DNA of 64,000 bases from Calcarisporiella thermophila CBS 279.70 (lineage: Eukaryota > Fungi > Calcarisporiellomycota). The position numbers were made by a program, and so were the translations under genes. The notes beneath the pieces are model-generated. The model saw only the letters and a program-made list of their open reading frames with translations, was not told where the DNA came from and ran no database searches. Positions 4,605-60,231 of the stretch are shown piece after piece (position 1 is the first letter of the stretch; every line of letters begins with the position of its first letter). The stretch covers positions 1,437,443 to 1,501,442 of the forward strand of contig NW_027192191.1 in assembly GCF_041956535.1 (NCBI RefSeq), read 5' to 3'.

Positions 4605-5010
4605 ATCCGAGGGAAGGTTGTGAGGGAATAATCTGGCGAGCGATGGGATGATTATGGGAGATGAGCGGTTGGAATTGAATGGTAATTTTCTCCTTTGCTG
4701 ACTGGAATAGGCAAAAATAACAAGCGCTGACAATGACAAGTAGAGTTCAGGAGAAAAAGGAAAAATATGGATGTTCGGACTTCCGTTACGAAACCAAGCA
4801 ATTTTATTGGCACTCCCTCCGCTAGGTGACACAAAATAATAACAATAAAAATAATAATATCAAAAACTGAAAGATAAAGAGGCGTGTAAGAAAGAAAGAA
4901 AAGGCTCGTTTTTGACGACGACATTAAAAAAACGTTAAAAAAGAAAAAAAAAGAAAAAAAAGAAAAAAAATGGAATCCACAGACTCCCGGTGCTGGCCAG
5001 CACGGAGAGT

Positions 5011-8000
5011 CTACTGGAAAGCGTCCTCTCGGTCGGCCTCGTTCACGTCCTCGCCAATATCCACAAAGTTGAGGAAGTGGGAAGGCCGGTGGACCTCGTG
5101 GTAGAACTCCTTCGGCAAATCGATGACAAGCCCGTAGCGCATGTCTGCGCGATGGGATGGCCCCATGAACGAGTAATTCCATATGCCAGTGTCCGGGACG
5201 AGGTAGGCGCCCATGAAGCGATCGGACAGCAGCAGCTGAACGCGCTCGTACATCGAGGGAGAGTAGCCCGCAGGATTGGCCCCCGTGTCTTTATTCTTTC
5301 GGCCCCATTCAAACCCAGCAGGGGTCAACTTGTATGCCGTGAGCGAACACGATCCGGGCGTGAAGGCACATGTAATCACCACCGTCTTCTCCCCGTCCCA
5401 CGATTTATTCTCCGCCATGATCTTTGCGTGCGTGGTCACATCGATCGGGGAGAGCTGCGGCAGCTCGTTGGGCTGGGTGTGGACCCAGCCAAGCGGCTCC
5501 ATGTCCTTGAGGTAGTCATGGTCGGGCAGAAGGTCGGGCAGATGCACCTGCTGGTGCGTGCCCCACTGTGGAACCATCACGATGGCGCGGATCTCCTTCA
5601 CCTGCGCATTGTCGGGGGGCGAGACGCCGTAGAGATATCCTGCGATCTGGGTCCGAAGATCGGCGATGGTGATGAACCGCTTGAGAATGTTCTTGGGCAA
5701 CACGTAGGTGTAGCCGGTCTCTCGGATGTCATCCGCGTTCACGTAGATATGGTTGGTGCGCAGGTGAAGATTGGTCGAGGAGATGGCACGCACACGCCAT
5801 TCCGTCTTGGACGAGAACGTTTGGGTCTCGTAGTTGCTGGTCGTGGTGACAATGATCTCGTCGCCGTGCACGTTGTGCGTCTTGGTGGTGACGGCCGTGA
5901 GCTGGGACTGCTCGCGCGTCTGCTTCTCGATCTCGGCGATCTGCTGGCGCTGTAGCGACGGCGCCGAGATCTCCATACCCAAGATAATGTCACGGATCTC
6001 GGACTGGGTGAGCGAGGCGGTGTTGACGTTGTTTTTCTTGCCGTAGTCGCCGAGGATCAAATCCTTCAACGACACCTCGACCTTGATCCATTCCTCGTCC
6101 GTCAGCGTCGGCCAGATGTGGTGCGGCTCCGTGATGGTGCTACGGTCGGGGCGCAGGATCATCTTCGCCTTGTCGTTGTTGACGTGCAACGCCCTGAGGA
6201 TGAGGATCAGACGCGAGAACGCGGTGAAGGACGAGATCGTCTTAAGCCAGTCGTCGTACAGATTGTACAGGACCATCTGGGGCTCAGTCGCCTTCAGGAT
6301 CTGATCACCAAGCTTCTCGACCTTGAGACAGGCTTGGAACGGAAGCTGGAGCTCGGAGCCCTTGATCACAATGTTGGGGAAGTCCAAGCAGTGGACCTCC
6401 AGCGGGTCAAGCATACCCTTGCGCGTCACAATAAGTTGCTTGGGCTGCTCTTCGACCGGGAGCGACCGAATCAGCGCCGCCACTTCTTCCGCCGTCTTCC
6501 ACTTGGCGAGCTGCCCGAGACGCTTCTGACCGGCCCACACGGACGTGTGGATAATCTTGAGGAAGAGCTGGCCCGTGCGAGGGTTGAAGACGAAGATAGC
6601 ACCGTTGATAGGCTTGGTGGTCAAATTGCCCTCGAAGGTCTTGTGGATGGTGACACGGTACACGTTAGTGTCATCGATGAACCAAATGACCTGGTTGCTG
6701 AAGAGCTCGTTGTAGTTGGTCGAGTTCAGGTAGGGCTCGGTGGGCTCGGAGGAGTACAGCTGCAAGGCCTTGCGAATACGCTCACGCAACACATAGAGGG
6801 CAGGGTCCGACTTCATGATCTTAGCCATGGCTTGTTGCACCAGTGGCTTCATGCCCGGGACCCAGTTGCCGTACGAAGACCATAGGTTGTACGCGAGATC
6901 GATGCCGATCATGAGACCGGTGGGGGACGGGTAGATGGACATGTTGTCGGTGGTGTAGTCGAGGAATTTGGCACGGGTGTAGCGCTCGATATCGTGGGAG
7001 TCGTAGTCACCCCAACGAAGCTGAACATCCACCCAAAGCTTATTGGCGCTATTTCCAGGCTCAAACTGGTCACGCGTATCGCTCACAAGCGAGGGCCGCG
7101 ACACGGGCCACTTATACGCTGCGAAGAGCACGATGTCAGCGCACGAGCTGTTCATCTTATAGGACTTACGCGGGTGGATGGCCTCCTTCTGCACCGTCTC
7201 GATCTGCAACGCCTCCAGCTCCTGGTCGAACACTTGGCACAAATCCATCACGACGGATTCGTGGATCTTTTGCCACAAATGGGCACGGAAGATCTGGATG
7301 AGCGAGATCTTCAGGGTGGGGATTTTGCCGTGCATGAAGATACCGGTCAAGTCGAGCTGGACCTGGAAACCGACATAGACGTTGGCACGGTTAATCGTGG
7401 GCGACCACCAAAGGGTGAAGCGACGGTTTGGAATTTGGTTAAGACCGCTGCGCTGCGCATTGGTCAACTTCTTGTACTTCATCGACTCCTCGAAACCGGA
7501 CGACTTCTCCCAGAACAAACCCTCCCAAGTGGAGTGATAGGTGCCCTTGAAGAGGGTGTGCTCCAAGATACCCTCTACACCCCCAAGGGCCTGGATCATG
7601 TCGGTGCGATAATTGTTCAGGGACCAAAGCTTACCATCATGGCGCTGCGACGTCCACCAGAACGGATTGTTCTTGAGGATCTGATACTGTTTGAACTCGG
7701 TTCGCACACGCCATCCCTTATCGTAGGCAAGGGTATGCCGGTCCTTGACAAAGAGGGTGTTGATACGTGGAATACCACGGTCCCACGAATCCTCCAGATC
7801 CTCCAATGTCAGACGGCGATTCTGAGCGTTGGCCTCCTGCCTCTTGAGGGCGTACTCGGCCCACACTCGTTGCGAGTCGATGAATTCCGATTCCCACGGC
7901 TGGATATAGCGGAATAAGTTCGGGATCACTTGGTCCTCCTCATGACTCATACCGGACCGGAAGTGGGTGATGCCAACATCTGTTTGCTTCGACCAGCGCA

Positions 8001-11000
8001 GATCCGACTGGGGAATAAGGATGTGGCCCATCGAGAGCATGCCAAGACCGCCCAGCTCTTTGGGCGAGTAGAACACGACCGGAGGGAAACGCGACGGCAT
8101 CTTCGAGTTGAGCCCGATCTTGATACGGGTCTGAATCTTGTTTTCACACTTGACGAGCAGGTCGAGGAGTTCCCGCGTGTGTACCACAGCCTCACGGAAG
8201 TAGGTCATAAGGCCGATGAGCGCATTGTTCCACTTGGACGCAACCTTGGTAAAGGTCGTGGAGCCGGACGACATGAGAATCTGCCGAATGCGATTGTGGA
8301 ACCGCTGCATCGACTCTTCGTCAACGCGGAGGAATGCTTGCGCGGTGCGCTCCTTAGTCTGCTCGTTGATCAGGGACCAGACACTATCACGCAGCGTGAA
8401 CTGCTGGTTGAGTGTACGGATCTTTGGCAGAATGCGCACTTCGAATCCGGCCATGGAAAAGAGCAAGTTTGGATTATCTTTGCTATATACGCTCACAAAG
8501 CTTTCCTCCCACTCGATGGTAGTGAGGGACCGCGGGAGGCGGTTCTTGATCTCCCAGAAGGTTGCTCTGCCCAAGTTCACATCGCGCTTGAATAACCGCA
8601 TGCGACAGTCTCGCGGCCAACAACGCTTGTTCGGATAGCCGACGATATTCTCGAAGTTGGGGTCGGGATTCTCAGTAAGGAAGCGTTGGATAAGGTCCCG
8701 AGCCTCATCAGCATTGAAGCGGAAGAAGATGTATATCTTGTCGATGTAGCGCATGTAGAGTCGGATTGGGTGACCGACTTCCGTGACCACATTGCGATAC
8801 TGCAAGAAGTCGTTGGGCATGTTGGGAGGACCGGCCATTTCACTTGCGCGCTTCAGACCAAGCACAAGCAGGTCGAGCACTAGACCGTAATATTGCACGA
8901 TAAAGCTCGCGAATTGCAACCCGCGGATCAATCCGTAGGCATTGGTGTGGTTGCAGTCTTTGTAGGTGAGAACTACGTTGTTTTTCGCGGTCATGTAGTC
9001 GGCGATGTTGTGGTCGACGATCAATCGCAAAAGGCGATTGAGCAGCGTCAGGTCAATCTTTTCGTAGAGGTGGCTGAACGTGCTCTGCAGCATGACATTG
9101 CACTGATCCTCGGAAATTTCCCACACGTCTGTGAGGTTGTTGATTCCTTGGCACCACTTATACACGAGCAATGGCGGTGGCTCCGAATCGCTGGGTTTAA
9201 TCCATGCGGGCCAAAGGTGGCGCTTGTCGGCTTCATACCACAGGTATTGATCGAGGTATGCGTCCGTGATTTTTTCCAGAGGCTCGATGTCGTAGACCGG
9301 AATAAGATGGCTGTACAGGTCCATAAATTCGATGCCGACCTCCTTGAAGGCGCGACTCGTTAAGAGGAGACGCTTAATTCGTGACAAACACTCGTGTGGA
9401 CTGTCGTAGGCCTGTTCGATCAAGCCCAGCTCTTCACGCTGACTTTGGTTGAGACGCCCCTTGACGCTATACGCTTCACGCAGTCTCTCCAAGGCCAGGA
9501 TCAACAGCTTCGTGTCATGCTTGTAGTTGAGGGGAGGGAACTGGATTGGAGAGAACTTTCGGCTCTCGAGCCAGTGCACGGTGGTGGTGTAAATAGCCAC
9601 CGCCTCCTCTGTGGTGATGTAGGGACCGTCCTTGAGGTAGTTGTGCTGGCGTTCCTGTTCCGCCTTGAGCCACAAACGAGTCAGTCGTCCCAAATTCTTC
9701 TTCGCGACCGTCTTATCCACGGTGGCGCCGCGACGAATACGCTCCCGATTGTAGTGGGCAACGCTGGTCCACCAGTCCGCCTTTGACTTGACGTAGCGCA
9801 GGATCAAATTTTCAATTGGGGCCGGCATTCCGGGCACTCTCCACGGGATATTGGCCTTCCAGCATCGCCATGCTTCCGACAAGTGCTGCAGAATAGTCTT
9901 GCTCTTGTTCTGCTTGACTCCGGGCGGCATCATGTCCAAGATGTCGTGCATCACGGCGGCACGCAACTCTAGATCGTAGTGGGACTCCACACGTTGCTTG
10001 GTGACGGTCTTCGCAATCCCCTTAGAATTACGGCCCTCGAAGTGCCGAGCAAGCAGGTTGCCAAGCCATCGCTCAAGCAATGGCACAATACCTCGCATGA
10101 AGAAAAGCCAAACACGCCAGCCAGGGGCCCAGAACCCAACACCAGGGCCTTTGCCGACGGGGCCGGTATTGAAGCGGTAGTAGATCAAATGCTTCAAATC
10201 TTTGGTCATGCGAATTTGTTTCATCAGCTTGTACTTGTACCGGTACATCCCAGTCAGCTGACCCACGTGAGCAAAGATGTATTGTAGACCGTCCGCCAGC
10301 TGGAACGCGTCCACATTTCCCAAACGATACTGTACATGCGAGTCCACAATCAACTTGGTGAGACGCAAGATTTCACGGCACAGATGCATACTGTTTCCGA
10401 ATCGCGACTTCTTACGCTCTTTTGTCGTCAGTGTTTTGACCGGTTTCAAGTTGAAGTTGTAGTCGAGATGAAGGTAGTTGAGGTTCTTGCGGTGAATCAG
10501 CAAATTAAGCATATTGTATCCCTGCCGACACACCTGTAGACCGGCCTCAACCCAATCTAACTGGGTGGTTTGGAAGAATTTTGTCGCTTTAAGTTGGCGG
10601 AAAAGATATTTTTTGTTGAGTGCGCGCGGCGGCCTGTGCTTAAGCGCGTTGTGTACGTAATTTTTGAGTAACTACATCACAATAAGAGGGCTGTCAGTGA
10701 GCAGGACTCTTGCAGAATATATTTTTCTATCAAATGTAAATTACCTTTTGGTAGGAGACTCGCACTTTTACCGGTTGTCCCGGAGGACAATGTTCCAAGT
10801 ACCAGTTTTTCACCAGCGGTACATCTTGTGCACGGCGGGTGCGGCCGCTACGCTTGTTGAATGGATGAGGGGCCCAGTAGATTGCAATTGCATTGGCGGT
10901 GTTTTCGGTTGAAAGGGGAGTCTCCTCCAGGAAAGGAGCTACCTCCTCGGGCAATTTGAACTCCTCGTCCTCCATCTCGTCGCCGAAAATCTCTTGCAGG

Positions 11001-12263
11001 TGTGCATCCGAGGCCTCATGGGACTCGATACCCCGTAGTGAAACCGGGTTAATGATTGGATCATAATAGAATGCAGGCAAGTCCGGGTCTTCCGCACGCA
11101 CATATACTACAGTTGGATAATGATACCACGACAAGTGTACTGATCGCGGCAATGAATTGTACAAAAATGGGAATGCAATACGGTATTCAGTGCGAATCGG
11201 CTGGCGAACAATGATCCGTCGGATATCATTGAACTCGTTCCAGTCTTCATCGGCCTGGTCAAGATCACGATAAAGGGGTTCAAACTTGGGACCACCAGGG
11301 ATAGCCATGTTCAACGCCTTGGCCGTAAAGAAGGACGGCAAGTCGAACAGGTAGAAATAGTTGCGGTCGGTTAAATCCGAGAGCAACTGGTGTGCCAGCC
11401 GATAAAGAGTGGACATGATAGGAAGATCCAGTTTCCACTTTCGATAGCTAGGCCCATTGACAAATTTTGTGTCGATCAACGGCTTATGCTCATAGAACCA
11501 TTCGTACACCGCCTTATCTTCTTCTTCATCAAGGTCAAGTTGGATGGGCTCGAGAGGTTCCACGCCAAGGATGTTGTCACCATAATCGAGTGGAGGCTCT
11601 TCGTCATCGAATGGTGGGAAGCGCATGCGCTTGAAATGGCGACGATCACGCTTTTCTCGGCGCATCATGATCCACATAGTACCCCATTGAGCAATGTATA
11701 TTGGCTCGATTACCCATGGAATCTCATTTACAAATGTAATAGCACCGGTAATGTGGTAAAGGATGGGGACATAACGGATCTAGAAATGATTCTAAATGAG
11801 TACGCAGTTTAATATGAAACATCGCGAAAAATTTTGAAAGTACCTGTTCCCAAGGCATAGGCATATTCTCCAACAGCTTTAATACGGCATGAGGCACGTA
11901 TTTTAGCGCACCCAAGTAGATTCGCTTGTCCTGGCGGAACTTGCGACTGGACATATCACCATGATCTTTGATGATCTTGCGAACATGTTCAGGAGGCATA
12001 TCTACTTTCTCGTGCTCCATAACACCTATAAAGGAGAGATCAGTCGATTAGCCATTGATCATGTTTAAAAAGGGTGGGATGAAATTGAGATAAAATAAAA
12101 ATCATGAAATGGATATATTACCGAATCGCTTTTTCATCCCATAACGTTTTGATTGCATTTGCTGCCATTTTTTTGCTTTTTCCTGAAGCTGCTCTTTTGA
12201 TAGCTCATAATCATGTAACGCATAACCCCCCTCCTGATATTGGGGATCCTGCGACTGATCCAT
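5011..12263 (-). CDS. PRP8: Pre-mRNA splicing factor Prp8 (U5 snRNP), 4 exons, intein-free
   Basis: Unmistakable motifs [74 protein letters not shown] and the C-terminal MPN domain GWVHTQPNE. Three short introns near the 5' end and a ~5.7 kb last exon. Confidence 0.99.
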
Positions 12264-15402: not shown

Positions 15403-17501
15403 TCAACACAAATCCAGTCGTACTCGCACATTTTTTGCCAGTCGTGCTAGTCGAAGAGCTGCCTCACCCATCACCGGGTTTCCTCGGAGAGTCAAAAACC
15501 GTACCCCTGCAAGCGACGAGTTCATAGCTCTCACCAGCGACTCTGCACCATCGGGACCAATCTGATTCCTATCCAAATCGAGGGTGGAGAGGGAGTGATT
15601 TTTCATCAGGCCTACCGCCAAAAACTCGGCCCCAGCATTCTCAATATAATTTTCGGCAAGAACCAGTGTGCGCAGGGTGGTGTTGGCCTCAAGAGCGCGT
15701 GCAAGATATTCGCAACCTTTGGATCCAATCTTGTTATATCCTAAATGCAGCGTACAGAGAACGCTGTTGATCCGGAGGCTATGAGCTAGTTGCTCGCACC
15801 CTTTGGAGCCAATTTCATTAGCACGCAGATCGAGGAAACGGATGCGACGGTTCAACGAAAGGGCACGACCGAGCGCTTCGGCGCCACGATTACGAGTATT
15901 GTTCCAGGAGAGATCGATATGCTCGAGGGCCACGTTGGGATGCTCCAATGTCCGGGCGAAGACCTCAATGCCTAGCAAGAATAAAGTTAGAGCTCATTCG
16001 ATGATGAAGAAGGGGGGAGGGGAGGAGAGAAGGATAATAACGATAGAAATACCTTTGTCTCCGATCTCATTTCCACTCAAATCAATAAAAGTCAGCGTCT
16101 GATTTACATCCAATGCTTTCGCAATATGCTCCAAGCCTTGATCCGACACACAATTGTCTGTCAGATCCAGGCTTCGCAGCCTGTGATTCACCCGAATAGC
16201 CTTGGCAAGCAACACGGCGCCCAGATTCTCGATCTCGCTTCCCTTGAGGTTCACCTTCACAAGGGTGTCGTTTTCCATGAGCGTTTCCGCGAACAATTGC
16301 CAGCTGGGGCCAGGCTGAAAGTCCAGCGCATGCAGCGAGCGTATTGCGGGGTTGTACTTGAGAATACTTTTGAGCTGGTCGGCAGTACTCACGTCTGCCG
16401 CGTGCAACCGTAGTGTGGTGAGTTGGTCAAGATCCTTGATGGTCTCTTGCTGTAGCTGATCTATCCGCTTTTCAAGCGCGAGAGTTTGGAGGCGGATGGC
16501 GGTAAACGCCTCCTTGAGAGGCTCATATTTGCAATGGCTAAGATGATGGCCGATTTTCTCGCGCTCAACCATCTCAGTGCAACCGCCCATGTGCCCGAGA
16601 ATGTTGCGGTGTGGACAAGGGATCACGCGTTTAGGGCATACCTCGTCATGCTCGTATTGGTCACAAAGTCTAAACACTGCATGACACATTTTACAGGGCA
16701 CCTCTCTATTAATGCAGTCATTCGATACGTGTTCCTTGAGAAAATGGAATGAATGATAGCGAGTGAGTGAAGATATTCATGAAGGCCGACAGAGGATGAC
16801 CATCTACCTTGAGCTCCTCTTCCTTATAGAATTTCTTGGAACATCCAAGAGAACAAGAAATCATTTTAAAGGCGCAACTTTTACGATGTTCATCGATTAG
16901 TTTACGAGGCAATATGGCTTTGCAATCTATGGACACCAGGTTAGTAACCACCAGAACAAAAATAATGGAACTTAGAGAGACGGCCTCACCTGGATATTCT
17001 TCATGAACGTTACAATAGACCAGCATTTCCTGGCACTCCGTCTACAGAAATAGAATAGAGTTAATATTTCGGGGAGATAGGAAACCAAGCACCGCCAGTG
17101 AACATCACCTTTAAGTGGTGCACTAATTCGTCGCGTCGGCCCACCCATGCACAGCTCTCCCAGAAACACCGTACCTCTAGCTGATTCACTATGCGCTCGA
17201 TTCGAACCGACCGTTTTAATTCCATCTCGTTCAAAGGGGCTCTGCAAAGAGCACATGTTTTGCTGCGCGCAATTGCACTCAAAATACAAGAACGGCAAAA
17301 GTGATGTCGGCAACGACGTGCTTGCGCGACATCCACAAATACATCATGACAAATACTGCAGATGAGATCGGGGTCTATACCCTCGGGATCGACATAACGG
17401 CATTCTTGCTGTGCTTTCTGCAGAATTTGCTCAGGGGTGTTAGAGAGTGGTGGGGCTGAAGAGGAGAGCGGTGGGGCTGAGGAAGACGGCGGAGGGTTCA
17501 T
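15403..17501 (-). CDS. RING (C3HC4) + TRAF-type zinc fingers + coiled coil + RI-like leucine-rich repeats; putative E3 ligase
   Basis: RING CSICHDVF...CRHHFCRSCI...CALCR; TRAF/SIAH fingers (LEVRC..C.W.G....HHLKEC, HRKSCAFKMISCSLGC, HDEVCPKRVIPC); coiled coil LQTLALEKRIDQLQQE; about 10 LxxLxLxxNxIxxxGxxxLAxAL repeats; 4 introns. Confidence 0.85.
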
Positions 17502-18190: not shown

Positions 18191-19285
18191 TTACTTGTTT
18201 GAACGAAGACCCATAATAACAACAGAGATTGCAACAGTAGCAGCACACGCGTTTATCCACATAAAGGCAAAGACGAAACTAGTACAAAAGCAACCACGGT
18301 CACAATCGATCACCACCATGCGAACGTTTGGATATGCTTACCTTAAAGTGTGATTCTGCATAATATAAAGACGGAAGAAAGTCATGGAAAGAGTGGTAAT
18401 AAGCACAACAGGAAGTAGAACTACAATCAGCACCACCACCCCACGGATTTTGTTGTAGCTCCGTTTAATCTCGCAGAGCCGCTTAGCGAACACGTTGGTC
18501 TTCAGTCCATGGGATAAGGACTCCACTGAGGAGTCGTGCCGCGCGTTTACCTCAAACACTTCGATATTTCTTGCAAGGATTAAGATCAACTGTCTTCCAA
18601 AGAAGATGTAGAACGAAAACATCACCACGATAAATATGCCCCACATCAGATAGAGACCGGTCACGAGCTGGCCATAGCCTTTCAGATTCCCACCATCGTA
18701 CACAACACCCGCCGCCGTGGCGAGCCCCTGGTTGAGGGCCATGGGCAGAAGCACCAAGGTAAACATGATCGAGGTGAGCTGGAAAGGCGAAGGAAGGAGG
18801 GTGCGCCCTGAGTTGGTCAAGCCTATATCGCTATAGCTATGGGGCGTGGCGAAGATCAGCCCGCTAAGATAGAATACAATGGCCGCGGCGGCAAACGGCC
18901 ACGCGGCATTGCCCCAGTTCTCACGAGCAAGCATTGACATGGGCACATTGTTAAATATCAGGGCGGCGAACACGGCGCGGAGGATAAAGAAGAGCATAGC
19001 GAAGAGGACAAACATCTCCGTCGGCTTTGGGTAGAAGGCCAGCTCCCGCTGCGACCATTCGAACAGGCGCTGGCGCCGCCGAATGGTACGGTCGAACAAG
19101 ATATAGCCACATAAAAGCACGAAAAGGGCGCTGAAGATGAAGTGGGCAAGATAGACCGCCGCGACAAACTGTCCCCCGAAACAATTCTCAATAGTGACGC
19201 GCCAATCACAAAAGGGGGTATCGTCGCTAACGTTGTCGTTGAACAGTAGGGAGCGTTGCAAAAGGAGCCTGCTTACAACCGCCAT
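18191..19285 (-). CDS. Seven-transmembrane (GPCR-like) membrane protein
   Basis: ORF 18338..19285 has six hydrophobic helices and an N-terminal CDWRxxxxxC motif. A GTAAGC intron adds a seventh helix (SFVFAFMWINACAATVAISVVIMGL), stop at 18191. Confidence 0.7.
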
Positions 19286-20260: not shown

Positions 20261-22122
20261 ATGTTGCCGACGGAAGTATACAACGCCTGCGTCTATGTTC
20301 CCCTTGCTCTATTCTTTGCATTGGGATGCTATACCGGCCTGAGGTTCCGTGAGGAGAATAAAAAGCTCGAGGATTTCCTTGGAGCCGTGCGTTCTCAGTC
20401 AGCCCTCACCCTGGGAATCAACTTTTTTGCCGCATGTAACTAACAGCTGTTGTTTTTGCAAATGATTTGCTCCGCTTTTGCTTATCGCTTGTTTTGTTTT
20501 TTCTTGCTCATGTTCATTTTATAGCCGTTGGAACATGGATTCTCACCACACTACCAGATGTCGCCACCATTGCAGGACTCCAGGGGCTTATCGTCTATGT
20601 TATCGCTTGTGTCGCGCCTATCCTCTTGCTCTCCGTTCTTGGTCCCATCATTCGCCGCAAGAACCCCGATGGCTTCACGCTTAACCAATTCATTTACAAG
20701 CGATTCGGGCGGGTCGAGCACCTTTTTGTCAGTATCATCACGATTATTTACATGGCGGCCTTGTTAATCGGAGAGCTTAGCGCAGCATATCAAGTGTTCG
20801 ACATGCTGACCGGGATTAATCCGTTGCCCGTGGTGATAGTTGTAGTGATTCTTACCTCAATTTATATTGGTAATTCACCATTTTCCGATGGTCGTATGTC
20901 TCAGGACTAACAAGCCATCGTATCCATAGCGGTGGGCGGTTTCCGTGCCTCTTTGATGACAGACTCGTTCCAAGGCTGGATCATCCTGGCTTTGGTTATC
21001 ATCGGGGCGATCACGGCGGGGACCAGTGTCAAGGTCACCCACGAAAACATCGTCGCAAACCCATGGGTCACCCAACAAACGAAGATAGGGTGGGAACTGC
21101 TCTATATTCTGCCAGCCGCCGTGACAGGAGCCAACCTCTTCCACCAGGTAACCCGGCTATTGACCTCTGGTTGACCGAGTTTCTCTCTAACCGGATCTTG
21201 CTCTCCCAAGGGCTTCTGGCAACGCACCTTTGCATCGCGCACCGATCGCGATCTCCTCTATGCCGTCGTTATTGGGGTTACTCTGATGCTCCCCGTCCTC
21301 TTCCTCGTTGGATTTACCGGCATCCTTGCTGCTTGGGCCGGGGTCTTCCCTGGGCCTGATCCAGAGAACCCCGTTCCCGGCTACCTCACCTTCTTTGCCT
21401 TGTTCAAGCTGCTACCGGACTGGGTCGTCGCGATGATTGTGGTGCTCGCTGCAAGTCTGATGTGCTGCTCCGTGGACACCCTACAGTCAGCCCTTATTTC
21501 CACGCTGTCGAGCGACCTCTTTTCCAACCGTGTGCCGCTGCTGGGAGTGCGGGTGATCTGTGTCGTGATCAACGTCCCCATCGTCATTCTGGCCCTCAAG
21601 AACGTGGACCTGCTACAAGTGTTCCTTGTGGCTGATCTGCTTGCCTGCGCCACCATCCCTCCCGTGATGCTGGGGCTGAGCGACAGACTCTTCTTCCTCA
21701 ACGGAGAGGATGCCCTCATCGGCGGCCTAGGCGGTCTCTTCAGCGTGTTTATCTTCGGATGGGCGTATCTTGGTGACGCTCTCAGTGGAATCAGGCTTTT
21801 GATTCTACCCAACGGCCTCTATGCCGATAACGAAGAGGTCTTGGGGGCTTTCCTTGCTGCTCCCGTGGGCGCCATTGTCTTTTGCTTTATCAGCTTTGGC
21901 GTAAGGCAGGCGGTTCGGGTGCTGTGGTCGCGTGTTCAGGGCAAACCTTACGAGTTCCCGAAAAATCCCGCACACCTGAGCATGACTCTCCCACGGTCCG
22001 ACGTCGGTGCGGATCCATTGTCGACGCATGAGGGCCACTATGGGGCGTGTGCCGACGAGGAGCGAGCAATGAATTCAAAACTGGCCGCCGAGGAGGGGAA
22101 AAAGGACGTCCTTCCCAACTAA
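20261..22122 (+). CDS. DUR31: Sodium:solute symporter (SSS/DUR3 family), DUR31/NCU01977-like; probable thiamine or thiamine-precursor transporter
   Basis: 4 exons. Motifs INFFAASVGTWIL, GFTLNQFIYKRFG, GGFRASLMTDSFQG, LFHQGFWQRTFAS and SVDTLQSA; more than 12 TM helices; TPP aptamer in the 3' region. Confidence 0.88.
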
Positions 22123-22153
22123 TATCCGTGTGCTTCATAATATCTTTTTCGCC

Positions 22154-22882
22154 GTAAGTATTTAATTTCTCTTCGCCTCACCCCCTTCTCTCCTCTATAT
22201 ACTATTCCCCTATTTTTTTATTATATATATATACACATATCTTAATTTATGAAGTCGGTTCACTTCCCCCTTATCCCTCTATAGATTTAGATTTTTAGAT
22301 TTTATTTATTCGCTTATTTATATATACATATATACATGGTGGAGGGGGGTTTTACTTTGGTTGTGGGGCTGGAATAAAATGGATGGGGTGGGATGAACCT
22401 CCTCCATTTTCTTTTCCAATCCCATTTTGCTCTCTCCATTATGGAGAGGGAAGGGGAGGGGAGGAATGGAGAATGGGGGAGGTTTGTTCGTATTTCATTT
22501 TTTTTTATTTTGAAAAATGGGCTACGGGTGGTTGATCTGCTCCATGTGAAGCAGCTCAGCCTGAGATATTACCGTCTGAACTTGACCATGGTTAATACCT
22601 GCGGAAGGAATGCCTATTTTTCATTCTACGGTTATTTTTCCCTTTTCACCCCCTTTGCCTTGCTCTGCTGGTTTGGCTCGGTGATGGTTCCACGTGTGCT
22701 TGAGACCGTTCCCATAGCGATTGGGGCGTAAGTAGAAACAAGGTTGCAGGAGAGGGGTGGGACGAACCAGGAGGGAAGGCGGGGAGGGAAAGAAATGGGG
22801 AGATATCATATTAGGTTAGGTTGTGTGCTTGTGCTTTATCACAGGCCACCCTGAACCTAATCTAGTTTCCTATGCGCCTCAG
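22154..22882 (+). other. Predicted 3'-UTR intron(s) carrying the riboswitch (22154-22717 and 22728-22882, with a 10-nt exon between)
   Basis: Consensus donor GTAAGT at 22154; acceptor CCCATAG ending 22717; second donor GTAAGT at 22728; branch point CCTAAT 22856-61 and acceptor CCTCAG ending 22882. Confidence 0.65.
22511..22623 (+). promoter_or_regulatory. TPP (THI-box) riboswitch aptamer in the 3' UTR of the SSS transporter
   Basis: P1 TGAAAAATGGGC (22511-22) pairs with GCCTATTTTTCA (22612-23), 12 bp. P2 ACGG/CCGT. P3 GGTTGA-CTGCT/AGCAG-TCAGCC. Invariant TGAGA (22562-66), GAA-CTTGA, P5 CATGG/CCTG with loop TTAATA, then CG-GAAGGA. All conserved TPP aptamer elements are present and in order. 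Confidence 0.95.
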
Positions 22883-23233: not shown

Positions 23234-24219
23234 CTATGCGTAGAGGCTATGCCTTTCCACCCTTTGTCTCTTCCACCCGGTCCCCACTGAGACGCCGTCC
23301 CACGCGCCGTCCCACGCGCCATCCCATTCTCCGGCCCCTGCGCTGCTGGGTGCGGACGTCTCCCGCCCGAGCACCCGCTCCTTCAGCATCCCCAGCTCCG
23401 CCTGCATTCCCCTGACCATCTCGACCAGCCCGCGGTTCTCGCGGTGCAGAGACTCGATGGCCAGGCGCAGTGAATCCATCTCCCGGGCCTTTTGCTCCAG
23501 ATCCTTGATGTATCTATCCTTGCGCTGCCGGAAGGCGCGCTGGGCGGCGCGATTCTGGGCGGCCCGGCGGGCATTGGCGGGCTTCTTCGATGGGTGTTGC
23601 GCAGACTGTTCAGGCGTCTGCGGCGAATCAAGGAGCTTGTTGGGGGTGGAGGGGGAGGGCGTGGTTGGCGAGGGCAATGGATCTGCTGTAGGCGGGGTGT
23701 AATCTAGAGTCATGTGCCAGAAGGGGGAGGAAGAAGGAGAGGGAGAGCGGTCAATAAATGAATGTGTCAAAGAGAGAACAGGTTCAAATAAAGAAACGTT
23801 TACAAAGAGACAAAAGAGGAGGAGAAAGCAGAAAAGGAATGGATCAACTATGACCAAGACTCACCAAGAGATATTCTCGGCTCAAATAGTGAGGACCACG
23901 GCGCTTCTCCGTATGAAAACTGGCCTTGAGGTGCGGGGGGTTGGCCCTCCAGGATTCCGTCGAAAGAAGCGCTGACCGGCGTTGGCAACGGGGACTGCCC
24001 CATATACATGTCTGGGAGGTGCATTGGTGTGAGCGGGGTCGCCAACGCCGACGACCAAGGCTGATTTGAGGACCATAGCGGGCAAGGGGAGCTGGAGCTG
24101 GAGCTGGAGCTGGGGGTGGCCGTGGTGGTGTGATTAGGATTAGAACTATTGTTCATCCTGAGAAGCTGCTTCGAAGCTTCGCTGTCTCCTGACGATAGAA
24201 CTGATATTTGGAGAGTCAT
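23234..24219 (-). CDS. Yap/AP-1-like bZIP transcription factor (2 exons)
   Basis: Basic region RRAAQNRAAQRAFRQRKDRYIKDLE plus leucine zipper; GTGAGT...AG intron ~23747-23864 joins ORFs 23848..24219 and 23234..23857. Confidence 0.9.
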
Positions 24220-26447
24220 TTTAAAAATGGAAAAGAGGGAAAAAAAACTATATTTTTAAAGCTAGAGAATATTAGTCTTCCGTAAAGAACAAAAAGAAGA
24301 AAACAGAAAGAGGAAAAAAAAAATCAAACAAAAGCTATAGCAGTTTAGGTACTAGCGCGAAGAAGCGTGTGAAGGAGGAGAGCAAGGTGGGTGAAGGAGA
24401 GGAAAGAGTTAAAGGAGGGCAGCACAAGAAAAAGAAAGTTAATAAAAGGGGGAAAAGGGGGGGAGAGAAAAGAAGAAAAACCGTATTTAAATGATATGTG
24501 TCAACAGCGGAGAAGCCGTGAGCCTGCGAAACACAATCGTGCCCATCGGACTGCACAAGAAACTCTTTCTCTCCAACCGATGGGAAAATATAAATAGAAA
24601 ATAAGATACAATGCGGCCTCACTCATGATAAAGTTAATTTCTGCGGATATTCCGAACCTCCCCCCCCCCCCCTCCTCTCTCCCCTCCCTCTCTCCTGCTC
24701 CACTCTTTGTCCATTTGCCTTGACGTCAGCCGGACTCCCTGTGATTTTGTTCTAGGGTTGTGGATTGTACAGCTGCAAATAGGGGAAAATGCCACCTGCC
24801 TAGTGATCCGAGAAGGCCGGCTTCCGTGAGAACGTAAATGCAAAAAAAAAAAGAATTCTCCCCCATTCTTCCCAGCCAGAGTTGATGGGGAGGAGGAAGC
24901 GACAGGAGTCAGAAGAGTGCAACGTGCAACGTAGTTTTAATTTTCTTCCTTTCCTTTCCTTGGTTTGACTTGGCTTTGCCTTGTCCTCCTGCCGCCTCCC
25001 TCACCCTCTCTCTCTAACCCCTCCCTCCCTCTCTCCTTCCCTCCCCGGGTCCGTGACCATCTTTTGTTGGGTCTTCCCCAAGCACGCATTAACCCATGCT
25101 CTCGATCGGCTGCAGTAGCTTTATTAAACCGTTGGCGAACATGTCGCATTGTTTCTCGCACAGCGCTCTTTTTCCTTATTCTGCTGTATTCTAGTTTATT
25201 TGATCCCTGATCTACAGCCCCCCTCAGCAGCGATCCAGACGGCAGAGGGGGGGGGCGGCATGGCGCGAAAGGGCATAAGCATTGCACCGCTTGTAAGAGC
25301 GCAATAAACCAGTAGTCCAATGGGTGCTCCCAAGAGAGGAAGGTGGCTGTATCCAAAGAGTTTGTGACCCCGTGTAAGCAAACCTTAGAGAGAAAAGGGA
25401 AAGATCAGCCGCTACACATGAGGTTGAGTTGAATGTGTTCAGGGCTCTCATTCTCTCCCCTCCTCCCCTTCCCCCCCCTTCCTTCCCTCTCTTAGGATCG
25501 ACAATTCAATCTTCTTTGGTGCCCTCCCCCAACCTAGGCCCTCCATTGGTGCCTCCTCATCTCCCACGTGAGTTCGTGGAATGGGCCGTGCTACAGCCGC
25601 GGGGTCTGGGCGCTACGAGCACAGGTGCAGCCCGCCTCAGCCTAGCGGTGCACCTGCGATACGGCCGGGAAAAGGCCCCTCTGCCTGAACCTTAGAGTTA
25701 CCGTGCGGATGCTTTTCCGTAGCATTTCTAATCAAGTGTCAGTGTCGTTTCTTGCGTGGAAGCATCGGCGCGCGGAGTCCAGAGGGGGGAACTGAATTCT
25801 TGGAGGAAAAGACGAGGGATCGAGATCCGTTCTCGACCAACTCTGACTGGATCGGCCGTTCCTCTCCTGTCGACCGCCATGGGTGGGTTTCGCTGGTCTC
25901 CCTGCGTTCCCAATTATTAATTTTGTCCAACCTTGTAATTCTACCGCCGTACATTTATTAATCTCGGCTGCTTTTTTTTTAACCCATTCGTCTTGCACTA
26001 CCCGGTTTCCCTGGATTCTAGTTCCTCTTCAGCTCCAGCCTCAACTCTAACCAGCAACCAAAAACTATGAGATCACAAATCAAGGTTCAATAGTGTGGTC
26101 CATGTTTTTTTTTTCCTCTGAGAAATGAGGCGCTCTTCCCCTCACTCCTCCCCCCCCCCAACCTCATCTTTTCCTCAATCCCCTCCCCCCTCCATCCTAT
26201 CAGAAAACCGAACTCCAAGATGCAAGTCACAATTGCGTGACTGTTCAGAGGCTTATCCGTGACTGTCGATTATTTGCGTCATCATACGATCTTTGAGCGA
26301 GGAAGAGTTCGTAAGTGTTCTTTTCGATAGCCTGGGAACTTTCTATAGCGAATTTTGCCGAGCATAATCTCGTATCCCAGTCCATCCGTAGCAAATTTAA
26401 CACAGGCCCGCAGGTGGTATATAAATGGTGCTATGGCAGTCAATTCC

Positions 26448-29400
26448 ATGCTCTCCTCGGCTTGTGTCTTCTTAGTTCCCAAGCGGACCATTCCCATTCC
26501 AAGTCAATCGTCGATCCGAATCGCTCGTTTACCACAAACACAGCTCCGATCCCCGGCGAACTATGGCTGGCTTCGATGCTCGAGCATCAGTGCACGTTAT
26601 TACACATCACCGGGGCGTGCGCCGATTCATCGGGATCGGAGATGGCTCTCAACGAGAAACTCGAATGAGCTCGGCCCACACGAAAAGGGGCACAATTCGA
26701 TAGAAGCCCTCGGAAGGAGACGGTCTCCATCGAATGGAGCACCCGCAAGCAGCGGGGCGAATAATTCAGGGGAGGGGGAAGGGACCGGCGGCGATGATCA
26801 TGGTCATGGACGCGATCCCAAGGACGGAAGCGAAGGAGGAAGTGGCAGCAACGGGGAAGGAGGGGCTCAGAGCGGAAGCGGCGGATCAGGTGGTGGCGAG
26901 AGCGGTAGCGGGGGAGGAGGTTCACCATTCGACGGAATGCCCCGCACTTTGAACGTGTTAGAGAACTCCCTCCAAAAGCCCTCTATACCCGACAATTACC
27001 CCCAAGTCCTAGCCCTCCCTATCACACGTCGCCCCCTCTTCCCAGGCTTTTACAAGGCTGTTGTTGTGAAGAACCCACAGGTCACCGCTGCCATTAAGGA
27101 GCTGGTAAAGCGGGGACAGCCGTATGTGGGAGCTTTCTTGTTGAAGGACGAGGAACAAGACGTCGATATTGTGAGCGCTGAGGACCAAGTGTATAAGGTG
27201 GGCGTCTTTGCGCAGATCACAAACGTGTTCCCGGCAGGGAACGCAGACGACCAGTCTTTGACCGCTGTATTATATCCACATCGCCGGATCCGGATGTCCG
27301 AGCTTATCACTCCAGGGGCGAGCGAGGATGGCGCGCCCAAGCCAGCTCAGGCCAAGATAGAAGAGCTGCCAGAGGAACCTGCAGTGGCTGGTGGTGAAGG
27401 TGAGTCCGCCTATCCATACCCGTCAACTTAAAAGTATGTTTTTTTTTTCCCTCCCTTAATTAATAACTCTATATAGAAACAGCTATCGAAAAATCGCAAG
27501 AGCAATCACCCCAGCAGCAACAGCAGCAGCAGGCTCAATATGCTACCACATTCCTCCGTAACTATGCGGTATCGCTTGCAAACGTGGAGAATCTTGCGGA
27601 TGAGCCTCACAGCAAACGCAACCGGCTTGTACGCGCCGTCACCTCGGAAATTGTGGCCGTCTTCAAGGACATTGCCGCACTGAACCCGCTCTTCCGGGAC
27701 CAGATTGCGAACTTTTCGATGTCGCACGCTGCAAGCAACATCTTCGAGGAGCCGGCTAAGCTCGCCGATTTTGCTGCCGCCGTTTCCGCGGGCGAGCCAC
27801 GCGAGCTGCAAGAGGTGCTTGAGAGTCTGGTGATTGAGGAGCGGTTGCAGAAGGCGCTTCTGGTGCTGAAGAAAGAGCTGCTCAATGCTCAACTACAGAA
27901 CAAGATTAGCAAGGATGTGGAGAGTAAAATTGCCAAGCGGCAGCGAGAGTACTATCTAATGGAGCAGCTGAAGGGGATCAAGCGTGAGCTGGGGATCGAG
28001 ACGGACGGGAAGGAGAAGCTGGTCGAAAGCTTCAAGGAGAAGGCGGAGAAGCTTGCTATGCCCGAGCAAGTGAAGAAGGTGTTCGAGGAGGAGGTCAACA
28101 AGCTCGCGCACCTGGAGCCCGTTGCTTCGGAGTTCAATGTCACGCGTAATTACCTGGACTGGTTGACCCAGATCCCGTGGGGTCGGCGCTCGATGGAGAA
28201 CTACAATATCCAGCATGCCGTTTCGGTGCTGAACGAAGACCACCACGGTCTACAAGACGTGAAGGATCGGATATTGGAATTCATTGCCGTAGGGAAGCTG
28301 CGAGGAACGGTGGAGGGGAAGATTTTGTGCTTGGTTGGGCCTCCTGGTGTCGGAAAGGTAAATTAGGAGAAGAGAATTTTAGGCGAGAATATGTCTTACT
28401 AAATCAACCATTATTGCGTTTCCTTCCCCCTCCCTCTCCCTCCCCCCCCTTTTTTTTGGGCATAGACTTCTATTGGCAAATCTATTGCTCGTGCCCTCAA
28501 CCGTGAATTCTATCGCTTTAGTGTTGGCGGTCTTACAGATGTGGCTGAAATTAAGGGCCACCGTCGCACCTACGTCGGTGCAATGCCTGGGAAGGTGATC
28601 CAGGCGTTGAAGAAGGTGCAAACGGAGAATCCACTGGTGCTTATTGACGAAGGTACATTCCTCTATCTGCGGTATTGTTTTTTTTTTCATACTCACCTCC
28701 CTCTGGCTTTCTCCCTCTTGCTTAGTTGACAAAATCGGTCGTGGCCACCAAGGTGATCCCTCGTCTGCTTTGCTAGAGTTGTTGGACCCCGAGCAGAATT
28801 CCTCGTTCCTTGACCATTACATGGATGTTCCCGTTGATCTTTCCAAGGTGCTCTTCGTTTGCACTGCAAATGTCCTCGACACAATACCGGGCCCATTGCT
28901 CGACCGTATGGAAGTCATCCAACTCTCTGGATACGTTGCTGAGGAGAAACTTGCCATCGCGTCGCAGTATCTCGCGCCCCAGGCCAAGGCGGCGGCCGGA
29001 TTGGAGCACGCCCACGTGGAGCTACATTCGGATGCCATGGAGGCTCTCATCAAGAACTACTGCCGAGAGAGCGGGGTCAGAAACCTGAAGAAGCACATCG
29101 ATAAGGTTTATCGGAAGGCCGCCTTGAAAATCGTGCGGGACATTGCGGGGGAGGAACGGCTTCCGTCCCAAGAGCTGGATAGTCCTGAGGTGAAGGACCG
29201 GAGTCGCGTTCACGACCCTGTCTCCGCCCAGCATGACCGAGAAAAGGTGAGCATAGGGGATTCGGCCGGTGAATCCGCCAAGAGCGAAGAGAAGAAAATC
29301 ACCATGAGCGAACGCAGCCCTCTAGCCGTTCCGCCCGATGTGCAAGTCGATATCACGGCGCAGAACCTGCAGGAGTACGTGGGGGCGCCCATCTTCCACT

Positions 29401-30083
29401 CCGACCGCCTCTACGATCGCACTCCCCCGGGGGTTGTGATGGGGCTGGCCTGGACTTCGATGGGAGGCTCGTCGCTCTACGTGGAGTCGGTGCTGGAGGC
29501 CGCGCTCCGCTCGCAAAACTCTCACCCGATGATTTCCAAAACGGGCCAGATGGGCGACGTGATGAAGGAATCTACCAGCATCGCGTACACCTTTGCCAAG
29601 GCATTTGTTGCGCGGCGGTGGCCCTCGAACCGATTCTTTGAGCACGCCTCCATCCACCTGCATGTCCCCGAGGGGGCAACGCCCAAGGACGGGCCGTCGG
29701 CCGGCATTACCATGGCCACCTCGCTGCTCTCGCTCGCGCTGGACCGCCCCGTGAACCCAGACGTGGCGATGACGGGCGAGCTGACGTTGACGGGCAAGGT
29801 GTTGAGGATCGGGGGGCTTCGCGAGAAGGTGGTGGCGGCGAAACGGTCCGGGGTGAAGAAGGTCATCTTCCCCAAGGCCAACATCTCGGACTGGGAGGAG
29901 CTGCCCGACTACGTGAAAGAGGGGGTGGAGGGGGTTCCGGTGGAGTGGTATAACGAGGTGTTTGGGGAGTGTTTTGGCGAGGTGGACGGGGATGCTGTGG
30001 GCAAGGAGGTGTGGGGCCCGTATTTCGACCGAGTTTTAGACAAGAAGGCGGACGTTGACCAGGACGAGGGCATTGTGGCGTGA
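26448..30083 (+). CDS. PIM1: Mitochondrial Lon protease
   Basis: Arg/Ser-rich presequence, Lon N domain ([10 protein letters not shown]), Walker A GPPGVGKT, Walker B VLIDEVDK, catalytic PKDGPSAG Ser and GGLREK Lys; 3 introns. Start may be 26433 or 26448. Confidence 0.97.
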
Positions 30084-39401: not shown

Positions 39402-40595
39402 ATGAAAGCATTGCTTCTATCAGGTCTGCTACTGCTGCTGTGCATCGGTGCATTCGTTTTGCAAACGGAGCTGACGCAGTGGGTGCAGAGAGGAGGAGAC
39501 TATGCAAAACCTTATTTCATGCTGTAAGTTAGCATTGTGCAAAGCATTTTACGAAGAAACTCTATTAACCAGACATCAATTAGATGGATATCGCACAGCT
39601 GCTACATCTTGCTCTTCCCTCTCCAACTTCTTTGGGAATATTTCTACCCTAATCCTAACCGGGTTAAGCTGTCAGCCCTCCAGCGGTATAGGCTGAAATT
39701 CCTTCGCTCTCTCAAGGAGCTCTCCCCACAATCTGAACATACTCCTCTTTCCACCTCCGAAAATGACTACGCATATGCACAAATTCCTTTCACCAAGGGA
39801 CATCTCGCGTACATTTTTAAAACTGTACTCTCTCTTTCCTTCCTGATCGCTCTGCCTTCTTTCCTTTGGTATACAGCGGTGGGCTTGACATCCACATCCA
39901 ATCTCACCGCCATCTACAACACAGCATGCTTCTGGGCATACTTGTTTTCCGTATGGATGTTGAGTGAACAAGTGCGCTGGGAGAAAAACATATCCGTGGT
40001 GTGCTGCATCTTGGGAGTTGGACTGATTGCCCTACTTGATCCTAAGCGTGACTTTGACACGCCGCCCCAGCAGCGCAGCGGAGAATTCCTTGGTAATCTT
40101 ATTGCGGTTGTATGTGCAGCCACTTACGGCTTCTACGAAGTGTACTACAAGCTTTGGGCCTCCCCGCCTCTTCGTCCCTCCGTCCTATTTGCCAATACAA
40201 TCACTGCGCTGATTGGCCTCGCTACGTTGCTTGTTCTTTGGATTCCCATCCCTTTGCTCCACTTCACAGGATGGGAGCCCTTCCAGCTCCCGTCGCTGCA
40301 AACGTTCGGATACCTCTTTCTGGTTGCTTTGTCCGGAATCATGTTTAACGCAGCATTTATGTGTGTCATTGCAATGACAAGCCCTGTGTATGCTGCTGTT
40401 GGGCAGATGCTTACCATTCCTGCGGTCGCGGTTGTGGATGCCATTGTGAAGGGACGGTCGCCCGAAATCGGCACCGTTCTGGGGAGCGTAGCGATCATGT
40501 TGGGCTTTTGCGTGCTAACCTACGGAGTAAATAAGGAGGTGAAGGCGGTAGAAGAAATAGAGGACGAACAGGAGGAGGATGCATCAAGCCCATAA
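39402..40595 (+). CDS. EamA/DMT transporter (SLC35F/THI74-like)
   Basis: FVLQTELTQWVQ..YAKPYFML|WISHS, LWYTAVGLTS.SNLTAIYNTACFWAYLFS, YGFYEVYYK and SPVYAAVGQMLTIP; about 10 TM helices. Confidence 0.88.
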
Positions 40596-58609: not shown

Positions 58610-60231
58610 TTACACAAGTTCTACGTAGGCTGGGGTCGGCCACAAGAAGGATTTGATCCAGGGGAAGACCTCCCAGCTGAGCAGCAGGGGAGAGTATGCC
58701 AGCAAGACGAGGGCGAACACCGCCATCTCCCACCAAAACCCATAGGTGTCGATCAGGAACCCGGCGAGAATGGGACCGATCGCCATCCCAAGCGAATAGG
58801 CCATGTTATAGAGTCCATACACCCGCCCGTTAGCGCCGCTTCCCATCGCGTGGACGCGGCTCCCGATTTCCGGGAGCAGCGGGGTGGTCATAAGGCAGCT
58901 GGCTGCACCACAAAGCAACAGGGGAATCAGCGACAAGTAGACGCTCCGGTCCGGGGGGATGGGGACAAAAAAGAGCGTGACCGCGAAGCAGAGCGCGCCA
59001 ATGCCGCTTACGAGCAGGCGGCCGCAGCGGTCCGCGAGATAGCCCACCAGGGGGGAGAGGAAGGTGGGCACGATCATGGCGATGAACAGGAAGCCGATGG
59101 TGGTTTCGTCCGCGTGGAAGGTTTGGCGCAAGTAGATCGGCAGGGTGGGCTCGATTCCGCAGAAGATGCTGCTTGCGACGATGGTGGCACAGAGGACGCA
59201 GAAGACCACGGGGTCGCACAGAAGGGTGAACATCGTGGGGGAATAGGAGGGCGCTGGTCCTTCCGGCGGAGCGTCCACGGGAGACACCAGGCGGGAGGAC
59301 TCGTTCGCGTCCGAAGAGAGCGAGGCCGAGGTTGACAAGGTGGAGGCATCCGACAACTTTCTTTTGCTCTCGGATGGCGACGAGGCCGCCGTGGTCGGGC
59401 CCAAGCCCAGCTCATTTCTCAGCTGGATCGGCTCCACCATCCACACCACCGCCATCAAATTAACCACGGCAAGCGCTGCGCAGAGCGCAAATGGCGCCTT
59501 ATACCCCCAGTACTGGAACATGAATCCTCCCAGTGGAGGCCCGGTCACGAGCCCCAACATGTTGATGGCCATGGCTGTTCCCATGACGACCCCGAGATTC
59601 TCGGGCGGGAAGACATCGGCCAGCATGCCGAGGCCAATGGTCCACGAAGTGCCTCCAGAAAAGCCCTGCATCGTGCGGGCGAAAACAAGCTGCCAATAGG
59701 TGTGCGCAGTACCAAAGCAGAAGGTGGAGATGCAGAGACCGAGCATGCCGATAATCATTGGATACTTTTGGGGGGAGCGTGGAAAAAAAAAAGGGGGGGG
59801 GGGGGGAAGAGCTGTTAAACACGGAACTGAAGCGCGCTTTCGAGTTGCAAAAACCAACTTACTCTTCTATTTTCATATCTGTCACTCAACACGGCAAAGA
59901 TTGGTGTGGAAATCAGAAGCCCTATGGCATAGCAAGCGAACAGGTAGCCCACTGCCTTCGAATCGCCGCCCAATTGGTCCTTCACAACCGTTGGCAGAAT
60001 CTTTATCCGGAAGCAAGGAATTAATGAATAAGAATTAGAGGCAGAATGCTCTTCAAACCGGCTTTGATCATGATGGAATCACGCCAATCCACTTACAGGA
60101 ACGACAACGCCATAAACGAGCATGTCGATGAACAATGCTAATGAGGAGACGCATAAAACAGCGTTGCTGGACCGCCGGAACCGCTCCATTTTAGAAGTGG
60201 ATGGTCTGGACATGAGACCTTCTATCATCAT
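58610..60231 (-). CDS. MFS transporter, SLC18/VMAT-like (DHA1-related)
   Basis: ALFIDMLVYGVVVP, motif-A-like GYLADRCGR, ARTMQGFSGG..W..GLGMLAD and YGLYNMAYSLGMAIGP; 12 TM helices; 2 introns. Confidence 0.92.

Follow-up and report, generated by a model that had tools for sequence, protein, structure and literature searches.

Can a fungal thiamine pyrophosphate (TPP) riboswitch be placed behind the gene that it serves, and how would it act from there? The question is raised by a 64,000-nt stretch of the Calcarisporiella thermophila CBS 279.70 genome (contig NW_027192191.1, positions 1,437,443 to 1,501,442 of the forward strand), here called the window, whose own numbering is used below. A TPP aptamer lies in it about 390 nt after the stop codon of an SSS-family transporter gene and on the same strand, an arrangement that points to co-transcription of the two. 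A preliminary description of this DNA, made from the letters alone, had proposed that the fungus regulates thiamine uptake by a plant-style TPP riboswitch in the untranslated stretch at the 3' end (3' UTR), through splicing and 3'-end choice. This interpretation as a whole is partly supported by the present analysis. The elements on which it was built were all found: an aptamer at 22511-22623 with a 12-bp P1 and the motif TGAGA, a DUR31/NCU01977-type gene ending at 22122 on the same strand, a GTAAGT donor at 22154 and acceptors at 22717 and 22882. The gene, the aptamer and the next gene are composed as follows.

20261-20435, plus strand: exon 1 of the DUR31/NCU01977-type SSS transporter, with the ATG at 20261 (matches the deposited 549-aa model)
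20436-20524, plus strand: intron 1, 89 nt, without aptamer (read from the sequence)
20525-20869, plus strand: exon 2 (PF00474 match; deposited model)
20930-21147, plus strand: exon 3 (deposited model)
21211-22122, plus strand: exon 4, ending in the stop codon TAA at 22120-22122 (deposited model)
22511-22623, plus strand: TPP aptamer with P1-P5 and no P3a (RF00059 match and fold)
23234-23707, minus strand: convergent bZIP gene (PF00170 above cut-off)

A search with the Rfam TPP model (RF00059), proposed in the preliminary description as a check, gave a plus-strand match at 22514-22627 that covers all 105 model positions (48.8 bits, E 1e-7). The match is full-length, but its score lies below the RF00059 gathering score of 54.3, so that a default Rfam scan of the window shows nothing; several fungal intron TPP aptamers likewise score below this curated cut-off. 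P1 is formed by 12 bp (22511-22522 paired with 22612-22623), the aptamer segment folds with z = -3.05, and CTGAGA is found at 22561-22566. The CUGAGA pyrimidine pocket, the GCG pyrophosphate segment and the UAAU loop 5 are all present and are invariant columns in an alignment of nine fungal aptamers, where 98.9% of the P2/P4/P5 cells are paired. Two-sided changes were found in 6 of 11 pairs across the nine aptamers, which no shuffle reaches, and the window copy itself shows two compensatory changes, C-G for G-C in P2 and U-A for C-G in P4. Since the stem pairs were taken from the Rfam consensus, this covariation measures the fit to a known fold and not the discovery of one. Judged by match, fold and covariation, the TPP aptamer after the window transporter is real, and it would be expected to bind TPP.

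The coding sequence at 20261-22122 agrees exon by exon with the deposited 549-aa model VTP21DRAFT_624; the transporter model was searched exon by exon, and whole-protein comparisons were made with the deposited protein. The protein contains the PF00474 SSF domain (61.2 bits, E 1e-16) and shares 40% identity with Podospora anserina PODANS_1_20420 (XP_001902998), which, to judge from the accession numbers, corresponds to the type II 'urea transporter' riboswitch entry XM_001902963 of PMC5882874. The gene is single-copy, with one locus only in the C. thermophila genome matched by the Dimargaris ortholog as query. On the strength of domain, identity and tree position (see below), the window gene is an ortholog of the DUR31/NCU01977 (SSSQ) transporters. 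Thiamine import is its likely function, because transport of thiamine has been demonstrated for Candida Dur31 (PMC5997356); it has also been shown for diatom SSSP (10.1101/2022.01.04.474978).

In the available parts of two surveys (PMC5882874, 192 fungal genomes; PMC11683625, 156 fungi), fungal TPP riboswitches fall into types I-IV, all of them in the 5' UTR or in an internal intron. The same aptamer and the same genes (NMT1 and 'urea transporter') are involved there, but the window differs in its 3' position. No aptamer was detected in the 5' region or introns 1-3 of the window transporter, which, with the aptamer lying 3' of the stop, places the gene outside types I-IV. The riboswitches of Neurospora NCU01977 and Candida parapsilosis DUR31 (PMC3597705, PMC5997356) belong to orthologous transporters and to the same aptamer class, whereas in the window intron 1 is an empty 89 nt and the aptamer follows the stop. 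In the Geosiphon and Basidiomycota-like orthologs, the intron that holds the aptamer interrupts the protein at the same place as this empty one.

Whether surveys had already listed such elements was left open in the preliminary description. No 3' aptamer on these thiamine genes is listed in the available parts of PMC5882874 and PMC11683625, and the sole 3' fungal entry found, in the portion of the PMC5882874 supplement at hand, is an unvalidated aptamer beside eIF5B of Postia placenta, a non-thiamine gene; speculatively, it could serve as leader to a downstream gene missing from the annotation. A full-text literature search returned no paper on TPP riboswitches in chytrid fungi. Fungal 3' TPP aptamers on DUR31 and NMT1 are thus apparently unreported, although an earlier listing could exist elsewhere. 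The preliminary description had also regarded the 3' design as known from land-plant THIC. It is known there, but not only there: 3'-UTR TPP aptamers occur in diatoms and prasinophytes on SSSP, THIC and SSUA/THI5-like genes, SSS transporters included (PMC4260697; 10.1101/2022.01.04.474978). The fungal 3' copies would form a fifth positional class beside the four 5' or intronic types, in a design so far treated as plant and algal.

A genome-wide model search revealed two convincing TPP aptamers in C. thermophila. The second, which scores 62.2 bits, follows the NMT1/THI5 stop codon at a distance of 160 nt, so that both are 3' of thiamine genes, in the same order of stop and donor, AATAAA, aptamer, pyrimidine tract and acceptor. 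The GTAAGT donor of NMT1 overlaps the stop codon (L001:1338-1800, G000:C1), and in the deposited 309-aa model it is left unspliced; splicing at this donor would remove the stop and, according to which acceptor is taken, lengthen the protein by 12-105 residues. The hydrophobic C-terminal extension of 12-105 aa was discounted as a signal, since pyrimidine tracts give such frames by chance. A third genome match (L003, 20.8 bits) was not recovered by the fungal TPP model built here. No aptamer was found in the 3.6-kb locus surrounding C. thermophila THI4 (G000:C11:537056-540658), unlike the Mucorales THI4 genes. The NMT1 gene of this genome shows 100% identity to a C. thermophila protein. It carries the motif GKIILDEL, like those of Neoconidiobolus, Catenaria and the chytrids (GK-I/V-I-I); Mucor, the Mortierellaceae and Basidiobolus have GKIQLDEL.

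Mapping of the aptamer position in orthologs, another suggestion of the preliminary description, was carried out on 11 non-Dikarya loci from species other than C. thermophila. Of these, five contain a 3' aptamer, five have none and one, from Geosiphon, has an intronic aptamer, which together with C. thermophila gives eight 3' aptamers at seven genes of five non-Dikarya species. The DUR31 gene is followed by two aptamers in tandem in Jimgerdemannia (63 and 42.6 bits) and by an aptamer of 52.3 bits in Polychytrium, and 3' aptamers were found at NMT1 of Polychytrium (62.6 bits), Rhizoclosmatium (62.3 bits) and Basidiobolus (59.6 bits). No aptamer was found within 2.5-3 kb of DUR31 in Dimargaris cristalligena, Coemansia and Zopfochytrium, or of NMT1 in Neoconidiobolus and Catenaria. 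Each 3' aptamer has a thiamine gene upstream of it, and the next called gene is convergent in the window (the bZIP gene) and at all five external 3' loci, indicating that the aptamer cannot be the leader of the downstream gene. That the aptamer is part of another transcript, either such a leader or a separate small RNA, is consequently very improbable; the argument for it is that published fungal aptamers, in the parts of the sources available, are nearly all 5' or intronic, and nothing more direct was found.

Two layouts can be recognized among these loci, in addition to the tandem case. In the first, Jimgerdemannia DUR31 repeats the order donor, AATAAA, aptamer of the C. thermophila genes, with a weaker donor, GTAATA, over the stop and with the AATAAA in a smaller hairpin 10 nt before the aptamer (z -3.2). 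In Jimgerdemannia flammicorona RUP49885.1 (L018:4984-5836) both aptamers follow the likely true stop, a TAA near 4986-4988; the 708-aa GenBank model reads through both of them and is probably mis-annotated. Tandem eukaryotic TPP aptamers are otherwise reported, in the available part of PMC5882874, for Saprolegnia NMT1, in 5' position. The second layout, aptamer and AATAAA without an intron, is that of Rhizoclosmatium NMT1 (L101:3066-3200) and Basidiobolus NMT1 (L103:3214-3380), where the aptamer begins 43 and 25 nt after the stop, respectively, and the AATAAA lies at its 3' edge; with its poly(A) signal at P1 it resembles diatom THIC. The Polychytrium loci fit neither layout clearly. Such 3' elements are missed or run through by the Rfam default cut-off and automated gene models.

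Aptamers in the 5' part of DUR31 were also found. The Geosiphon aptamer lies in intron 1, with two donors (L019:3170-3833), and in two Glomerales-like soil contigs (L022, L024) and several Basidiomycota-like contigs the aptamer is in the 5' part of the gene; in the one such contig read in sequence it occupies the same intron 1. Those metagenome loci from human-associated samples that were examined encode fungal transporters. The counterpart of this intron in Calcarisporiella and Jimgerdemannia is shorter than 90 nt and empty. In a DUR31 tree of 22 taxa, rooted by assumption on the chytrids and with the Neurospora and Candida proteins left out, the window protein and its Jimgerdemannia counterpart form a group (92/87) whose sister is a clade of Glomeromycota and Dikarya (100/99), and the clade that joins it to the Glomeromycota and Dikarya orthologs has 96/99 support; a gene tree of this kind need not equal the species tree. 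Both the outgroup and the sister group of the intron-1 clade show the 3' state, so that a single move from the 3' end to intron 1 is the simplest reading. The intron-1 aptamer of Glomeromycota and Dikarya DUR31 looks derived, on a tree with few taxa, many losses and an assumed root. The NMT1 aptamers published for Mucorales and Dikarya are, in the source parts available, 5' or intronic, against four 3' NMT1 copies here. With 3' aptamers in chytrids, Basidiobolus, Endogonales and Calcarisporiella, the choice offered by the preliminary description, convergence with plants or an ancestral mode, leans toward the ancestral within fungi. The 3' position may be the original fungal arrangement, and these distributions suggest a shift of the aptamer along its gene in the course of fungal evolution. 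The Glomeromycota, which are arbuscular mycorrhizal fungi, are not known to synthesise thiamine; their DUR31 is a candidate riboswitch-controlled thiamine importer.

How the window aptamer could act was approached through the elements that surround it, all on the plus strand.

22154-22159: consensus 5' splice site GTAAGT (candidate), 32 nt after the stop (sequence)
22282-22284: candidate proximal acceptor; the resulting 131-nt intron would leave the AATAAA and the aptamer in place (sequence)
22371-22511: long hairpin; its 3' arm extends to the first base of P1 and is paired with the AATAAA (-71.8 kcal/mol, z -7.9, 0 of 200 shuffles)
22373-22378: candidate proximal poly(A) signal, an AATAAA that is predicted to be base-paired where the hairpin begins
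22552-22559: two candidate CAG acceptors (22554 and 22559) inside P3, with a branch-like TTGAT upstream (sequence)
22613-22717: pyrimidine-rich stretch with no AG over about 90 nt, up to and including the candidate acceptor TAG at 22715-22717 (sequence)
22728-22882: second GTAAGT donor at 22728, branch CTAAT at 22857-22861 and acceptor CAG at 22880-22882 (sequence)

The order after the stop is therefore donor 22154, an AT-rich stretch, AATAAA 22373, hairpin, aptamer, pyrimidine tract, acceptor 22717, donor 22728 and the branch and acceptor of 22882. The AATAAA, the hairpin, the second donor with its branch at 22857 and the acceptors 22284, 22554 and 22559 were absent from the preliminary description. 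The stretch 22728-22882 is a well-formed 155-nt intron, or else 22882 is a distal acceptor for donor 22154. GTAAGT has a frequency of 0.18 per kb per strand in the window, and it was found after the stop in none of 57 control gene ends and overlapping the stop in two; these controls are putative gene ends from 264 kb of C. thermophila, defined by long open frames and not by annotation. The window donor is thus unusual. Less weight attaches to the NMT1 and Jimgerdemannia donors that overlap the stop, since this pattern is also produced by ordinary coding introns (2/57). The AATAAA lies between donor and aptamer, as a candidate processing site, and is commonplace in such a place, with 21 of the 57 gene ends having one within 390 nt of the stop; after these stops it occurs 21 times in sense and 48 times in antisense, so that its use in C. 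thermophila is unproven. It is also predicted to be sequestered, with an unpaired probability of 0.01, equally low in only one of 150 other AATAAA sites. No AATAAA is found within 300 nt 3' of the window aptamer. Matches of the hairpin to miRNA families were far below cut-offs and were dismissed as generic hairpin matches.

In land-plant THIC, low TPP leads to a short 3' end, and at high TPP the processing site is lost by splicing, the mRNA then being long and unstable (PMC10226581). The reading that we favour, with a probability of roughly 0.43, is that the window carries an OFF riboswitch acting on pre-mRNA 3'-end formation of a thiamine importer and laid out in the same manner. At low TPP, cleavage and polyadenylation between stop and aptamer would give a short, stable mRNA. 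At high TPP the nascent aptamer would fold, donor 22154 would be spliced to 22554/22559, 22717 or 22882, and the proximal 3'-end signals would be removed; the resulting long, poorly expressed mRNA would run toward the convergent bZIP gene, and the protein would be identical in both forms. TPP binding, the use of these sites, the direction of control and the instability of the long form are what we infer here. This reading is favoured by the covarying aptamer stems, by the order donor-AATAAA-aptamer in DUR31 and NMT1 of C. thermophila and in DUR31 of Jimgerdemannia, and by a perfect donor after the stop that is unmatched in the control gene ends. The AG in P2, which plants use as acceptor (10.1101/2022.01.04.474978), is kept in C. 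thermophila NMT1 and Jimgerdemannia DUR31, and the characterised plant and fungal TPP switches act via splicing (PMC3597705, PMC10226581, PMC5997356).

Several results weigh against it. P2 of the window copy begins ACGG and so has no plant-type AG acceptor. Duplex energies between the pyrophosphate-binding P4-P1' strand of the aptamer and the donor region were no better than those of random genome segments (predicted P 0.29-0.81 for the window gene and 0.12-0.95 over the three genes), and the predicted donor openness is 0.62 without the aptamer fold and 0.24 with it, which is the reverse of the polarity in plants. As a partner in an aptamer-donor masking helix, a short pyrimidine element next to each donor was tried and did not rise above the genomic null. 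Acceptor 22284 permits an ordinary 131-nt intron from donor 22154, and the 43- and 25-nt spacings of Rhizoclosmatium and Basidiobolus leave no room for an intron ahead of the aptamer, so that splicing cannot be the mechanism common to all loci. Compared with land-plant THIC (PMC10226581, PMC3597705), the window shares the aptamer after the stop, the sequence in which donor, candidate processing signal and aptamer succeed one another, and a protein unchanged by the predicted splice, but the gene is a transporter and a 140-nt hairpin covers the AATAAA. Since the two defining plant features tested, the P2 AG and the donor pairing, both failed, it should not be filed under the plant THIC mechanistic type.

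A further point against control by splicing comes from Phaeodactylum, whose 3' aptamers showed no response to thiamine (10.1101/2022.01.04.474978), and it also gives rise to the leading alternative: an aptamer that is conserved and binds TPP, with no thiamine regulation of the gene under ordinary conditions, as in diatom THIC and SSSP. The precedent is direct, on a homologous transporter with a 3' aptamer, and diatom and prasinophyte aptamers resemble the fungal ones in their 3' position on an SSS-family thiamine transporter and an NMT1-domain gene and, for the window copy, in the missing P2 AG. The aptamer is absent from five of the 11 other non-Dikarya loci, and no significant switching helix was found. 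The diatom and prasinophyte systems are, on the other hand, not fungal and have no described 3'-UTR donor, the diatom copies being those tested as non-regulating, whereas the fungal aptamer is kept with compensatory changes beside two thiamine genes in three phylum-level lineages, the order donor-AATAAA-aptamer recurs in three genes, and Jimgerdemannia has retained two aptamers in tandem. We regard an element without regulatory effect as unlikely.

The hairpin before P1 suggests instead that the poly(A) signal could be occluded directly, without splicing: a TPP-bound P1 would stack on and stabilise the hairpin hiding AATAAA 22373, leading to read-through, and in the TPP-free state the 5' strand of P1/P2 would pair with the 3' base of the hairpin (22487-22501) and free the signal. 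The pairing of the AATAAA at the base of a hairpin with z -7.9 that abuts P1 fits this model, as do the hairpin-borne AATAAA of Jimgerdemannia and the AATAAA of C. thermophila NMT1, which is predicted to be paired too, although taken by itself the NMT1 hairpin lacks significance (z 0.5). In the longest segment folded, removal of the aptamer fold makes the signal more open (0.23 against 0.01 with it) and the ligand-free ensemble includes the helix of the P1/P2 5' strand with 22487-22501, but in shorter segments the signal is paired either way (0.02 against 0.02), and therefore no switching is robustly predicted. The model also depends on a signal whose use is unproven and leaves donor 22154 unexplained, and we regard it as rather unlikely, a shade more so than an aptamer without effect. 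To be doubted slightly further still is an aptamer in the mature 3' UTR that would act on mRNA stability or translation, with the AATAAA constitutively hidden and the 3'-UTR introns constitutive or unused. The mature 3' UTR must contain the aptamer in Rhizoclosmatium and Basidiobolus, in the window the prediction is that the AATAAA is hidden in both states, and intron-less 3' switches are found in thiamine-responsive algal genes (PMC4260697). The window, however, offers no AATAAA shortly past its aptamer from which such a UTR would end. What also counts against this possibility is that, to our knowledge, a mechanism of this kind has never been demonstrated for a eukaryotic riboswitch.

A broader reading joins position and mechanism. 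The 3'-end TPP riboswitch would be the ancestral fungal design, retained by chytrids, Basidiobolus, Endogonales and Calcarisporiella on their DUR31 and NMT1 genes; the 5' and intron switches of Dikarya, Glomeromycota and Mucorales would result from later relocation; and the Calcarisporiella and Jimgerdemannia switch would hide its poly(A) signal in a P1-stacked hairpin, with or without splicing. We know of no natural eukaryotic riboswitch for which such hiding has been described, and as a whole this conjunction is speculative and improbable. The two layouts make control by a 3' aptamer, a question left by the negative diatom result, testable in culturable fungi, and NMT1 of Rhizoclosmatium and Basidiobolus would be good controls for a mechanism without splicing.

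No thiamine gene cluster is apparent among the named neighbours of the transporter in the window, which are the following.

5011-11677: PRP8
15994-17501: RING/TRAF/LRR gene
18338-19285: membrane open reading frame without Pfam match
26355-30083: gene reading as a Lon protease
39537-40595: EamA transporter
58610-59857: MFS transporter

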